In this document: piece by piece, positions 1 to 58,559 of the stretch
How positions within the stretch are numbered: the first letter of the stretch is position 1
Layout: each line of letters opens with the position of its first letter
Assembly (NCBI GenBank): GCA_965649765.1
Contig: OZ287755.1
Coordinates: forward strand, 31,620,001 to 31,684,000
DNA from: Bispira polyomma
Taxonomy: Eukaryota
Length of the DNA: 64,000 nucleotides
Reading direction: 5' to 3'
The notes under the pieces: model-generated
Database searches by the model: none
Seen by the model: the letters and a program-made list of their open reading frames with translations, nothing else
What the model was told of the DNA's origin: nothing
Translations under genes and position numbers: made by a program

Positions 1-1612
1 TGGTTAAAAACTGACGAAAAACTATTAGAAGTAGATACAACCATTTAAATTTGTTTTTTGTGTTCTCATGTAATGTTTTAGGTATGCACCCAGTTGACTC
101 AATGTTGACAAGTCGGGCCTGTCTTAGGCTGCATTCTGCCTTTGCTGCCTCTACAGCTAGATCCTACGACAGTATGGTTAAGATCTTTGTCGCCTTTGGG
201 GCGTTCATGGGCTGGCCCCCCACTCAGGTGAACGTATTTAGAATCTTATCTTTTCTAGAATTTTTGAACCACAATTCAGTGTCGTCGGCTCAAATAGTAA
301 ATTACTTGTCTGCAGTGAAGGAGAAATGTATTTTGTATCACATATGTGTGGACTGCTTTGCAGATCCCAGAGTTTCTTATTTTAATCATGCTCTGGCAAT
401 CAATAGACCTCTCCAGGTAAAACTCAAAAGTATTTTTGATATCCCTCTATTGACAGCTTTAATTGCAAAATGTGACTGTACCTATATGGGTCAAATTTTC
501 AAGGCCGTGTATTTGACCAGTTTCTTCACTTTTCTCAGATTGTCTAACCTTTGTCCCCACTCGGTGGCCTCATTCTCTCCCTTAAAACATTTAGCAAGAG
601 GAGATGTTTTATTCAAGCCAGGCTATGTCATGCTACTTATTAAGTGGTCCAAGACAAAATTCGATTAAATTGTTGACCATTCCAGTAATTCCGAACTCCA
701 TTCTATGTCCTGTGGCAGCCTTAAGGAATGTTTTAGCCTTGACTCCCCCTGGTAGTAATGCACCTCTCTTTCAGTACAAAGCGGGCAGCTCTTGGGGGGC
801 CTTGACTGACACTCATGTCAGACGTCATCTGAAGAATGTTCTTCAGCTGCTGGGGTGCCAGGCCTCGAATCTGACCTTCCACTCCTTCCTACGTTCAAGT
901 GCCACGTTTGTGTTTAACAATAACGTCAATGTTCAGGATGTTCAACGTCATGGCACCTGGACGTCGGATTGTGTGTGGAGGTATATTACTGATTCTTCTT
1001 TGGCTGGCTCTCAGGTGGCGGATTCGTTCAGGTTGGCACTACAGTCTAACTCCTAGGTCTCTTGGGTTTGGTGGTCTGGTTTGTATGATCAGCTGGAAAA
1101 CAAATAACATGTATAAAGTTCATGTCTAATAAAATATAAATCTGGGCAGTGGAGACACTGCCTCTCCTTGGGCATAAGGTCAACCTATACTCAAGTACAT
1201 AATGTACTCATTTGTAACATTTTGATCATTACACATTTTGGGTATGCTTAAACTCAACCTAGGGCCAACATATGGTCCCCTTATCTCGCATACCCTCTAA
1301 ACTTAACAGTTTCTTAATCTCAGGTTAGGGTCACCTTATGCTGACCCTAATCCTCCTTAAGTTATGGTCACCTTATCTTCACACCTTTTCAAGCTCAGTT
1401 TAAGGTGACCTTTATTTCAAAATTCTCCAATTTGAGGTGACCTTATGGCACCCTTAAATCCAAATGTAATTACATTTAGGTTGACCTTATGCCCACAGGC
1501 AAGCTGAAACTGTACATATATAAAAAAGTAGTCATTAACATGCTAGTCATTAATAAAATATACCGCAAAGTCGTTTCAGTGTGTTACATTCTAGATTAAG
1601 GTAAACTAGGGA
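1..1612 (+). mobile_element. YR retrotransposon E1 (DIRS order, Ngaro-like), 3' part: RNaseH tail, YR, B-type 3' region
   Basis: RNaseH tail WLKTDEKLLEVDTTI* (1-48) matches the E4 pol end; YR follows. The 3' region has TTGGGTTTGG, GGTSACCTT repeats and AATAAA..ACCGCA like E2-E4. Right end approximate. Confidence 0.9.
82..1056 (+). pseudogene. tyrosine recombinase of E1, frameshifted near 660
   Basis: FLRLSN (catalytic R), KWSKT, HSFLRS (HxxR), HGTWTSDCVWRY; split over ORFs 51-668 and 604-1056. Confidence 0.9.
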
Positions 1613-1639
1613 ATTAATTTAACTTTCAACCCTGAGTAA

Positions 1640-3020
1640 CTGATAAACACAGGTTAATCAATTTGGTGATAGAAGGTGCAAGAATTTCAATGCAATCCTT
1701 GATAAGGAAAGTAGGCATAGGATCCAGGCTACATGATTTTGTTGGTGATTTTGTTGAACATTAATTTCTTGATGTAGTCAACACCAACTTCAGTAAAACA
1801 GGTGAAGCAGACATGAGTTGTTTGAAGAGACTCAGTCTTATGACTATCAGAAAAACTACTTCGAATGAGTTCTATTTTCTCTTAAAAATACTTGCAAAAC
1901 ATTTTTGCAACTGAAGTATCTGAATTGCAGTCGGGCAGCTTTCATGAAGTATACCATTCAATACATACCAGAGGGCCTTAGGGTCATTAGAGTTTTTTTA
2001 ACAATTCCTGAGTAGTAATTGGCTTTATTAATGAGAACATTGCATCTGTGAGTTAGCTGCCTTAACTTTGACTTGTATAATGCAGATAATGTAGGATTCT
2101 GCAGATTCTTACGCCAGAGTCTTTCATATACTGGCGGCGCAAACACTTTGCATTCAGGTACTCATCAGTGATCCAGGCAGGGGTAGCTTTCTTAAGTGAC
2201 TAAGCAATCACTGGGGTATGTTTGTCTGTGACATCTGACAGAGATTGTACATATTGGTCGTACAGTGTTGTAGGATCATCAGAAGGAGCCGTAACAAAGC
2301 TTGTATTTTTTAAGTCAGCTCTAAATGAATCCATATCAATTTTGTGATATTGACGGAAATGAACCTCATAAGCTACTTTATTGTGGACATAGTCACAGTC
2401 TTAGTTTCAGACAGTTGAAAAATGATCACTAACAAAAGCATTTTGCCGTACTTCGGAGAGACTTCGGAGATTATAGTAAAATCTAAAGTATGGCCATGTA
2501 TATGTGTTGGAAAGTCAACTAATTGATTGCGATTGCATGATGCGAGTAATGATTTAAACTTTTGGCTATGTTGGGTATCAGTATCATACTGAAATCGCTG
2601 ACTATGACGAAGTCGGATTTGAATGTTGACAGGTAAGTAACTAGTCCCATGAATTAATCCAGAAAAAGCGGGAGGATCTAGGTGGTCTGTAAAGGACAAT
2701 GATGTTGACCAGGGACTGGGGACCAGTACAGAAACAATAATATGTTCAAAAGTTTTTGCAGGAAAGGCTTCTAGCCGCTTTACACTCAAGGTGTTCCTGA
2801 CAAGTATTCCAAAACCCCCACCAGGTGCATGCTTATGAGGAATATGATCGAGAATATAATTAGCAGGCGTGAGGTCATTTAAAAGTGCAGGAGTATCGTT
2901 GGGTTTTATATGGGTCTTCGTGATCCCGAAGATGTCACAGCTGGTACTGTTTAAAAAGTCCTCAACAATCGGACCTTTGTTTCGAACAGAGTGGCAGTTC
3001 ACATGTCCCAGAGTTATTGG
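1640..3020 (-). mobile_element. degraded non-LTR retrotransposon (L2/CR1-like) ORF2: AP endonuclease and linker
   Basis: ORF 2373-3002 has NCHSVRNK, GGGFGI and QLVDFPTHIHGHTLD (APE motifs); ~1660-1735 reads SCSLDPMPTFLIKDCIE, typical of the pre-RT linker. Confidence 0.85.
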
Positions 3021-57370: not shown

Positions 57371-57374
57371 ACCC

Positions 57375-58559
57375 CTATATCTTATTAGGATGAGATTGGT
57401 TGGATTTCGATGCAATGCTCTTCTCACACTTTGCAGCCGAGTGAGAGATGTCCTTATTGAGCACTCTATGACAGTACGAGCATATGTGCCTGTACTGTAC
57501 GTGGTCGCCTTCCTGATGGCACTTGCCTAAGTTGTAGTACTTGCATAATAATTTCCCCTTCTGTGAATATCCGGAACCGCCTGTGACTGCCCCGGTGTTA
57601 GTCTTCTGACTGTTAAGCACTGTCAGCTGGGATACACTCATGCGGGTTAGGGCACATTGTGTGGCGTCCCTCCAATGAAGGCGCCCGTCCTCAACCTCCT
57701 GCATATTAGCAGCCCACGCAGCCCTAACTGCAGGCCATGGGAGAGAAACCGCGTCTTTAAGTGAATGCATAACTTGGTCTAACATCTGTCTTAATAATGT
57801 CTGGTCCTGAACTTGCGACACATTGAAGAGTTGGCCGGCTGCCCACTGGGGCAGTGTTAGGTCATCGAATGTCGGCCTTTTCTTACCGGCTACTCCGCTG
57901 CAACCCTCGTTTGGCCTTCTCAGTTGGGGGTCGGCATTAGCAATGTCAGTGGTATTGTAACGGCCTGATATTTGTCTCAAAAGGGGCTTACCTTGCGTCA
58001 ACTCAGTTCTCAGCTGGGCGTCGTAGCTAGCCAGGTGGTGGTTGACGGCCGCGGTCACTTCTGGCAGTGATCTCAACACGTCCACTTTGGGAATGATTCC
58101 ATCCCTCTGGTAATCATGATGTGACGCGACTCTGGGTATACTGTGTACTCCCTGAGGGTAAGCAGGGTCACGAGTGTGTTCCCTGACAGGCGCCGGTAAA
58201 GCGAAATCCCCCGTCTGTCTCTGGTCAGCCAGGGTACCGTTCCTAGAAGCAGATGGAGATCCGAGAGGGGTGGAACTATATGACCCACGCGATTCGACTC
58301 TGTCCAGCCGTTTATGGATCTGCGAGTTGGCCGTTTCCAGCTTCTGTAACATTGCAAAGACATCCCCGAGTCCGGCTTGATTAGGGACAACCGGCTCAGG
58401 TTGGACGATTGCTGTATCAGCGAGCAGCCCTTGCAAATTAAGAGCTAAGGGGTCCGACACGTTAGCAGAAGCACCTGTCTTATTAGTAGGTTTCCTTGTA
58501 GAAGCACGTTTTTTCCCCTTCATTGGTACACTAAGAGGTGTCTTAGTTGACTTGCCCAT
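57375..58559 (-). CDS. gag-like ORF1 of E6 (open, from MGKSTK)
   Basis: Open frame with WPAVRAAW and C-terminal CKYYNLGKC..H and CSYC..H..C fingers. Confidence 0.85.
   Translation of the reverse strand: MGKSTKTPLSVPMKGKKRASTRKPTNKTGASANVSDPLALNLQGLLADTAIVQPEPVVPNQAGLGDVFAMLQKLETANSQIHKRLDRVESRGSYSSTPLGSPSASRNGTLADQRQTGDFALPAPVREHTRDPAYPQGVHSIPRVASHHDYQRDGIIPKVDVLRSLPEVTAAVNHHLASYDAQLRTELTQGKPLLRQISGRYNTTDIANADPQLRRPNEGCSGVAGKKRPTFDDLTLPQWAAGQLFNVSQVQDQTLLRQMLDQVMHSLKDAVSLPWPAVRAAWAANMQEVEDGRLHWRDATQCALTRMSVSQLTVLNSQKTNTGAVTGGSGYSQKGKLLCKYYNLGKCHQEGDHVQYRHICSYCHRVLNKDISHSAAKCEKSIASKSNQSHPNKI

Follow-up and report, generated by a model that had tools for sequence, protein, structure and literature searches.

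Conserved splice signals in Ngaro-type retrotransposons of a Bispira polyomma locus predict a spliced Gag-recombinase message

How do Ngaro-type retrotransposons translate their tyrosine recombinase (YR)? The question is raised by a stretch of 64,000 nucleotides (nt) from Bispira polyomma (contig OZ287755.1, positions 31,620,001 to 31,684,000 of the forward strand), here called the window. It contains no N runs and carries six retrotransposon copies, E1 to E6, whose genes come in the order gag, reverse transcriptase (RT)/RNase H and YR. The elements are Ngaro-type YR retrotransposons of the order DIRS. Published models of Ngaro and DIRS elements (PMC13003380, PMC3783388, PMC9210276) describe the same elements and the same order of open reading frames (ORFs), with overlapping ORFs and a presumed frameshift for the YR; as quoted in PMC13003380, Poulter and Butler proposed in 2015 that this frameshift is programmed. 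Our comparison of the window copies with their relatives suggests another answer. Conserved splice signals in gag and at the start of the YR probably yield a spliced message in which the N-terminal part of Gag is joined to the recombinase. The window copies, mapped by tblastn with gag, pol and YR of relatives, are as follows.

1 to about 1047, plus strand: E1, the YR end alone, cut by the window start.
About 8939-13468, plus strand: E2.
20221-15882, minus strand: E3.
About 23774-27359, plus strand: E4.
About 48711-46262, minus strand: E5, without a YR.
58559-53764, minus strand: E6.

The class assignment was made from domains, catalytic residues and relatives. Pfam models for RVT_1, RVT_3 (RNase H-like) and Phage_integrase/SAM-like matched E3, E4 and E6 in this order; no further domains were found in these three copies, a methyltransferase, a protease and a DDE integrase being absent. 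In an alignment of 13 YRs that included E3 and E6, residues R163, K198, H281, R284, W307 and Y315 (numbered as in relative L001) are invariant or nearly so. The YRs of the window are mutually 31-57% identical, and the copies therefore represent different families. Split direct repeats were not detected around E3 and E6, both of which are old, degenerate copies. Relatives L001 to L004 are four near-identical intact copies with the canonical Ngaro split direct repeats, which in L001 are 100% identical (A1 3583-3808 with A2 9512-9737; B1 9037-9373 with B2 9837-10174) and thus point to recent movement of this family.

The relatives were drawn from several sources. Twenty-four were fetched from other assemblies, with YR identities of 25-57%. 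A search with the YR exon of E3 matched 314 proteins; the 120 listed are 45-55% identical and form 26 clusters at 60% identity, and all those traced among the listed matches come from ENA assembly ERZ22147071. Ten close families (L001-L015) were fetched with their flanks. Scanning JGI metagenomes with a YR alignment added 22 loci at 24-38% identity, 14 of which include the YR start. One distant clade is linked to corals through a protein match in Montipora capricornis, and L038 comes from a second ENA sample. The counts given below refer to 15 close and 14 distant elements, 29 in total, for the splice acceptor, and to 17 elements for the donor (E2, E3, E5 and E6, nine ERZ22147071 families, L017, L018 and L020, and L038 from the second ENA assembly).

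We propose that the full-length Ngaro RNA would be alternatively spliced. A 5' splice site in gag, at the end of the N-terminal part of Gag, would be joined to a 3' splice site at the start of YR homology, and the C-terminal part of gag would be taken out together with all of pol (approximately 2.8-3.3 kb). Translation of this subgenomic mRNA from the gag ATG would give a Gag(N-terminus)-recombinase fusion, while the unspliced RNA would give Gag and, by a -1 frameshift at gag/pol, Gag-Pol. Three products would thus arise in a retrovirus-like expression programme, and through the Gag segment the recombinase would reach the Gag/RNA/cDNA complex, or nucleic acid, much as Pol does through the frameshift. 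We infer that the sites would be used in vivo, that the fusion protein would be made and that it may serve co-assembly, packaging or recruitment. The corresponding features of the window are listed here, with a slash marking each predicted cut.

80-81, plus strand: AG of the E1 acceptor TTTTAG/GT, the best-scoring AG among 7 nearby.
82..1047, plus strand: E1 YR exon, with an ATG right behind the acceptor and the frame broken near 655.
8939..9397, plus strand: remnant of E2 gag exon 1, its frame broken near 8965-8989 and its final base the G of the split Gly codon.
9398-9399, plus strand: GT of the E2 donor GAG/GTAAAA.
9398..12498, plus strand: predicted E2 intron of 3101 nt, the remainder of gag and pol.
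12497-12498, plus strand: E2 acceptor TTTTTACAG/AG.
12499..13468, plus strand: E2 YR exon, a degenerate copy with stops shortly past the acceptor.
19651..20221, minus strand: E3 gag exon 1, open for 190 codons from its ATG and ending with the G of the split codon, with zinc knuckle and helices.
19650-19649, minus strand: GT of the E3 donor CAG/GTAAAT.
16865..19650, minus strand: predicted E3 intron of 2786 nt, containing the C-terminal part of gag and pol with several frame changes.
16866-16865, minus strand: AG of the E3 acceptor TTTGTTTCAG/GT.
15882..16864, minus strand: E3 YR exon, intact, 326 open codons to the stop.
23774..24288, plus strand: E4 gag remnants, the donor-bearing stretch deleted.
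26330-26331, plus strand: AG of the E4 acceptor TTTTCAG/GA, ranking first of 15 AGs, with no ATG upstream.
26332..27359, plus strand: E4 YR exon, broken.
48340..48711, minus strand: remnant of E5 gag exon 1, ending at the donor, with a frame shift immediately upstream of the donor.
48339-48338, minus strand: GT of the E5 donor AAG/GTAAAA.
57992..58559, minus strand: E6 gag exon 1, open over 189 codons and ending in the split G.
57991-57990, minus strand: GT of the E6 donor AAG/GTAAGC, ranking first of 60 GTs.
54734..57991, minus strand: predicted E6 intron of 3258 nt, from GT 57991-57990 to AG 54735-54734.
54735-54734, minus strand: AG of the E6 acceptor TTACAG/GT.
53764..54733, minus strand: E6 YR exon, its frame broken near 54003.

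A first, sequence-only reading of this DNA had named the five acceptors and four donors, all in phase 1, and the lengths of the three introns. Inspection of the sequence bore out each of them and supplied the strand of the E5 donor, which that reading had left unstated. It had also placed the acceptors a few to about 45 nt past the pol stop, and we measured 6-45 nt in the window (a few to approximately 180 nt across all elements). The deletion that it described in E4 is real, this copy lacking residues ~119-157 of the nearest gag.

The donor lies after the first base of a Gly codon (xxA G/GT Axx), just before the conserved K-S-x-R-G motif of gag. In all 17 elements this codon is GGT and the codon that follows begins with A; the codon before it ends in A in 16 of them (T in L018). 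The result is a donor string, AG/GTA, that is invariant save for this one base at -2. The encoded residues vary around it, with K, Q, S, P, A, E, G, R or H before the Gly and K, R, N, S, T or I after it. The sequence-only reading had asked whether GGT is freely replaced by other Gly codons in relatives. It is not: GGT stands at 17 of 17 donors, whereas a single codon was kept in 6 of 218 invariant-residue columns (2.8%) and in 1 of 19 invariant Gly columns. As a control for codon use, GGT accounts for 35.5% of Gly codons, and 26% of codons end in A. In an alignment of 11 gag sequences, the start codon alone, of 184 columns, had an invariant third position, and when the codon alignments of gag, pol and YR were scanned blind for an invariant AG/GTR, one column came up, the donor column. 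One control Gly, encoded by GGT throughout the nine close families, is encoded by GGC, GGC, GGG and GGA in L017, L018, L020 and E4; unlike this control, the donor Gly keeps its codon in L017, L018 and L020. With a rough weight matrix, the donor ranked between first and third among the 50-90 GTs of gag in 13 of 15 elements, and the remaining high-scoring GTs sit at differing places in each element.

The acceptor is equally regular. Where YR homology begins, each of the 29 elements has a pyrimidine tract and YAG/R in phase 1, with a pyrimidine always at -3 and G or A always at +1. In the YR frame this AG spans two codons, the A closing one and the G opening the next. Among the 20 bases upstream, the 14 distant elements have 11-18 pyrimidines. 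The close families share the 12-16 nt ahead of the AG, with no synonymous change, although their YRs are only approximately 50% identical; in a blind k-mer scan, this word was among the most widely shared of the element, level with the gag/pol slippery site. Candidate branch points (CTGAT, CTAAT or CTAAC) can be read 20-35 nt upstream in most elements. A rough acceptor matrix chose this AG as the best within 260 nt in 17 of 29 elements and placed it in the top three in 26 of 29. Wherever an element has both donor and acceptor, the two share phase 1, and the junction codon starts with G and so is never a stop, which means that joining the two sites always leaves an open frame.

These signals, their phase and their nucleotide-level conservation extend across very divergent elements, and this bears on whether the match could be a product of chance, inherited by descent in a few related copies. 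Chance does provide some of the ingredients. Around an ORF start, a phase-1 AG should turn up about every 20 codons, AGGTA occurs in the donor phase about twice more per element elsewhere, and one control Gly is also GGT in all the close families. The weight of the acceptor signal therefore rests on its pyrimidine tract and its positional conservation, not on phase alone. Synonymous sites in these elements are otherwise randomised, the donor column is the sole one of its kind in the coding alignments, and the donor is kept in elements of other samples with YR identities of just 25-40%. An origin by chance is extremely hard to credit in view of this.

The YR frame itself often lacks a start codon. 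Read upstream from the AG, it meets a stop after 3-66 codons, and within 32 codons in all elements except L024. Between this stop and the AG, six of the 15 close elements and ten of the 14 distant ones have no in-frame ATG; a conserved, independent YR ATG, the prospect of which had been raised from the sequence, was thus not found. In the distant set the first downstream ATG comes 11-138 codons past the AG, beyond the A-x-R-x-x-T motif, which all aligned YRs of the window and the close families have in common. E6 is the clearest case in the window, as had been noted before: its acceptor is preceded by an in-frame stop at 8 codons and followed by a first ATG at 79 codons. In L007, which is otherwise intact, a shorter tract throws the upstream ATG out of frame.

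The alternative that these data address most directly is translation of the recombinase from unspliced genomic RNA at a start of its own near the pol stop, whether by termination-reinitiation, leaky scanning, internal entry or a non-AUG codon, with the splice-like motifs being incidental or serving another function in RNA or DNA. Nine of the 15 close elements do have an in-frame ATG 6-15 codons upstream of the AG, often directly before the conserved word. In the active L001 family, a UAAUG overlaps the stop of pol with such a start, and E1 and L014 each offer an ATG within 1-5 codons past the AG. Upstream of the E3 acceptor, in-frame ATGs stand at distances of 6, 7 and 14 codons; neither E3 nor E1 would by itself require splicing. 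The upstream ATGs of the close families, where present, fall within the stretch that shows no synonymous variation. The overlap in L001 and these ATGs make translation from unspliced RNA possible in those close families, where it may coexist with splicing. As the general explanation, however, an own start leaves too many elements without an ATG in a frame closed upstream by a stop, and conserved YR residues lie before the first downstream ATG. Between the pol stop and the ATG lie anywhere from 0 to ~160 nt, and neither the invariant AG/GTA of gag nor the missing synonymous change upstream of the acceptor is explained. We regard this alternative as unlikely.

Could the YR be made as an extension of Pol, by a programmed frameshift or stop-codon readthrough at the pol/YR boundary? 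This would agree with the view of Poulter and Butler in the form in which PMC13003380 quotes it. Pol and YR overlap slightly or share a frame in E4, L008, L014, L021 and L025 (in E4 with a stop between them), and two database ORFs run from pol into YR. The offset between the two frames is 0, +1 or -1 without preference, however, and several stops often lie between the ORFs, making a fixed frameshift unlikely; PMC3783388 too notes that the YR is in the same or a shifted frame relative to pol in all Ngaro groups. The YR frame is open for only 3-32 codons upstream in all but L024, and the overlaps are short or closed by stops. Moreover, no slippery heptamer or hairpin was found at pol/YR, though the gag/pol boundary of the same elements has both. 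At gag/pol, the heptamer A AAA AAC in the gag frame is followed by a spacer of 6-9 nt and a hairpin of 8-9 bp, with pol in the -1 frame, and it accounts for the conserved K-N near the C-terminus of Gag. The hairpin sequence differs by family (GCTGCCC/GGGCAGC against CACTGCA/TGCAGTG) with its pairing retained. The signal was located as follows.

9964..10000, plus strand: E2 gag/pol -1 signal, A AAA AAC with a 7-nt spacer and a 9-bp hairpin (-18.2 kcal/mol, z -5.1).
19000..19062, minus strand: E3 gag/pol heptamer A AAA AAC with a weaker hairpin.
L001:5361-5406, L007:4471-4524 and L014:4534-4573: gag/pol signal in relatives, also present in L006, L010 and L012.

The heptamer is absent at gag/pol of E6. 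The elements can use frameshifting, yet they show none of its marks at the pol/YR boundary, and we consider a Pol-YR fusion very improbable.

A further alternative accepts the YR acceptor and changes its partner. The donor could lie in a 5' untranslated leader, as in retroviral env mRNAs, or on a trans-spliced leader, an internal ATG then serving as the start of the recombinase. A sequence resembling a 3' splice site, TGTnTTTCAG, does stand 25-110 nt before the gag ATG of E3 and of every one of the ten close families (in E3, minus strand, a pyrimidine run and TTTCAG with the AG at 20251-20250), which hints at a leader intron or another use in splicing. We looked for a conserved leader donor upstream of this site and found none. 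In many elements the first ATG lies 11-138 codons into the exon, so that conserved residues would be lost, and the invariant gag donor and the universal match of phase would have no explanation. A leader donor or trans-spliced leader is, in our judgement, quite unlikely.

A second leader motif was observed in the same region. Eight or nine families (L001:4033-4052, and at the same place in L005, L007, L008 and L010-L013) share a 19-nt word, AAGGGACGGTCTAACCTAT, placed 130-230 nt ahead of the gag ATG, with TTGACAACCTCAGGCTTG before it and a T-rich run behind. The equivalent region of E3 (about 20398-20340, minus strand) keeps TTGACAACCTCAGGCTTG but just GGGACG of AAGGGACGGTCTAACCTAT. This word could be a transcription, packaging or priming signal. 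Its use as a branch point or donor was considered and rejected, the spacing to the next AG being inconsistent and GTCTAA being a poor donor.

Returning to the splicing of gag to the YR, we examined what the first exon would contribute. Exon 1 would supply 137-266 Gag residues, the conserved pieces being an N-terminal C-x2-C-x3-H-x7-C knuckle, a heptad-like helix and another helix whose end coincides with the donor. The remaining sequence is disordered, acidic and rich in Ser, and a structure model of exon 1 has a pLDDT of 62, with low confidence outside the knuckle and the two helices. Only E3 retains both an open exon 1 and an open YR, while the C-terminal part of its gag and its pol (within 15882-20221, minus strand) are broken by several frame changes and a deletion. 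This pattern of open exons and a broken intron involves approximately five disruptions and is not statistically significant, with a chance of roughly 1 in 10.

Three other sites of nucleotide-level conservation, and one rearranged gag, were noted in the coding regions. Within gag exon 1, 170-270 nt before the donor, the Lys-Leu-Ser codons AAGTTAAGTA are identical in eight families despite the sixfold choice of Leu and Ser codons (window 19921-19912, minus strand; L005:3621, L008:4703, L010:3539, L011:3854, L012:3765, L013:3797, L007:13093). The motif equals the 5' splice-site consensus with T for G at +1, and one may speculate that it is an unspliceable binding site for U1. In the C-terminal region of the YR, the Trp-Thr-Ser-Asp codons CCTGGACGTCGGA, rich in CpG and holding the palindrome GACGTC, are conserved as nucleotides in eight elements (window 957-969 and 27197-27209, plus strand, and 15981-15969, minus strand; L005:7903, L007:7882, L008:7903, L011:7930, L014:7873), and GACGCTGTGCGT in the RT domain is a similar case. 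In L008 (4399-6997), the N-terminal Gag segment nearly abuts pol, the C-terminal domain of gag being missing.

Several observations weigh against splicing of gag to the YR and have to be set beside the evidence for it. The case is comparative throughout. Most of the close relatives derive from a single assembly, and the splice-site weight matrices were merely rough heuristics. Donor positions +4 to +6 are poor in most elements, which lowers confidence in single sites; this is, on the other hand, as expected of regulated splicing, where most of the RNA must remain unspliced. In one coral clade, represented by only three sequences (L024, L025 and L028), the candidate donor AAA G/GT ACG stands ~25 residues further along gag. 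The frequency of phase-1 AGs by chance, the upstream ATGs of the close elements and the stop/start overlap of L001, all described above, belong here as well. Finally, the fused product itself was sought. No Gag(N-terminus)-YR protein was found among the best 120 matches of three YR searches (with E3, L001 and a coral-clade YR). Among the matches listed, the E3 and L001 searches gave plain YR ORFs alone, of 179-381 amino acids (aa) and from one ENA assembly. The coral-clade search gave Logan-derived and NCBI (Montipora capricornis) proteins without Gag homology, two of them being read-through ORFs from pol into YR. A profile of ten exon-1 sequences was compared with 1.84 billion representatives and gave 619 matches, the best 150 of which are all Gag or Gag fragments without a YR. 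A 604-aa cluster member proved to be a gag-pol read-through. An exon-by-exon tblastn over approximately 300 kb of fetched loci also revealed no exon 1 abutting a YR and no intron-less copy. The missing fusion protein is weak negative evidence, since nearly all of these matches are ORFs from genome contigs; the few Logan contigs, of DNA or RNA origin, are short.

How far the proposed route extends is a separate matter. That splicing from a donor in gag to the YR acceptor is the ancestral and general Ngaro route, from the cnidarian-associated lineages to the lineage of the window, seems to us an evenly balanced proposition. The enzyme would then always be a Gag(N-terminus)-YR fusion; Gag would be accompanied by Gag-Pol, through the -1 frameshift, and by the fusion, through alternative splicing, and the frameshift model for the YR would be replaced.

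Other features of the window and the fetched loci were recorded. The segments 40629-40937 and 59682-59987 (both plus strand) are near-identical, ~19 kb apart and contain similar open frames of 102-103 codons; they are copies of another repeat, not one of the YR elements. A 232-codon open frame at 2376-3071 (minus strand) belongs to other sequence. An Rfam search of the window gave no match. Among the relatives, L009 (259-8086) and L010 have gag-pol-YR followed directly by a 5'-truncated pol and another YR, repeated head-to-tail, and in L020 (1-4210) and L025 (1-3796) a YR is followed, ~700-800 nt on, by the gag of another copy. Such arrangements fit tandem or multimeric insertion, or recombinase-mediated recombination between copies.

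Spliced subgenomic mRNAs are standard in retroviruses and in some long terminal repeat (LTR) elements, and the subgenomic env mRNA is one of the nearest parallels. In both, as we propose for the Ngaro-type elements, one transcript serves as genome and as mRNA, and a suboptimal donor near or in gag is joined to a downstream acceptor with removal of gag-pol. In avian sarcoma/leukosis viruses the env donor even lies inside gag, and Env begins with the first six codons of Gag, so that these products too start with Gag residues. There are also differences. Here the downstream gene encodes the integration enzyme rather than an envelope, the Gag part would have its 137-266 residues with recognisable motifs instead of six, and the elements are YR elements without LTRs, a protease or a DDE integrase. 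The Pol of foamy viruses is a retroelement enzyme for which, as proposed here for the YR, a dedicated spliced subgenomic mRNA takes the place of a Gag-Pol frameshift; it is not fused to Gag, whereas the matching frames seen here predict a fusion, and pol still seems to be expressed by a -1 frameshift. The Gag-Pol frameshift of retroviruses and LTR retrotransposons, the signal for which is present at gag/pol here, also tethers an enzyme to Gag in a minority fusion that co-assembles. The proposed YR fusion differs in that it would be made at the RNA level by splicing and would carry the N-terminal part of Gag alone. Penelope-like elements that contain introns, reportedly described by Arkhipova et al. 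in 2003 (a reference given in PMC6431247), are a further parallel, as their copies too retain what looks like a functional spliceosomal intron. In them the intron is an oddity kept through replication, while here it would be gag-pol itself, and its alternative splicing a route of expression.

The literature searched, including PMC3783388, PMC9210276 and PMC13003380, makes no mention of splice sites, an intron or a Gag-YR fusion in YR retrotransposons. The sequence-only reading had known of no such description for Ngaro or DIRS elements, and none was found, although key Ngaro papers fall outside this coverage and a prior description is possible. Within this literature, the comparison supports viewing the spliced Gag-YR route as a variant of retrovirus-like subgenomic splicing that is new for YR retrotransposons.

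Reviews assume a ribosomal frameshift for the YR, and a conserved in-frame intron would give its expression a concrete and testable mechanism. If correct, it would explain why the YR ORF is often without a start codon and can lie in any frame relative to pol, and these elements would have converged with retroviruses on balancing genomic RNA against spliced mRNA. Annotation by ORF calling, or as three genes, would miss the real product. The zinc knuckle and helices of Gag would have a second role as a targeting module for the recombinase, and such a role of the Gag N-terminus would bear on the domestication of Gag-like and YR-like genes.

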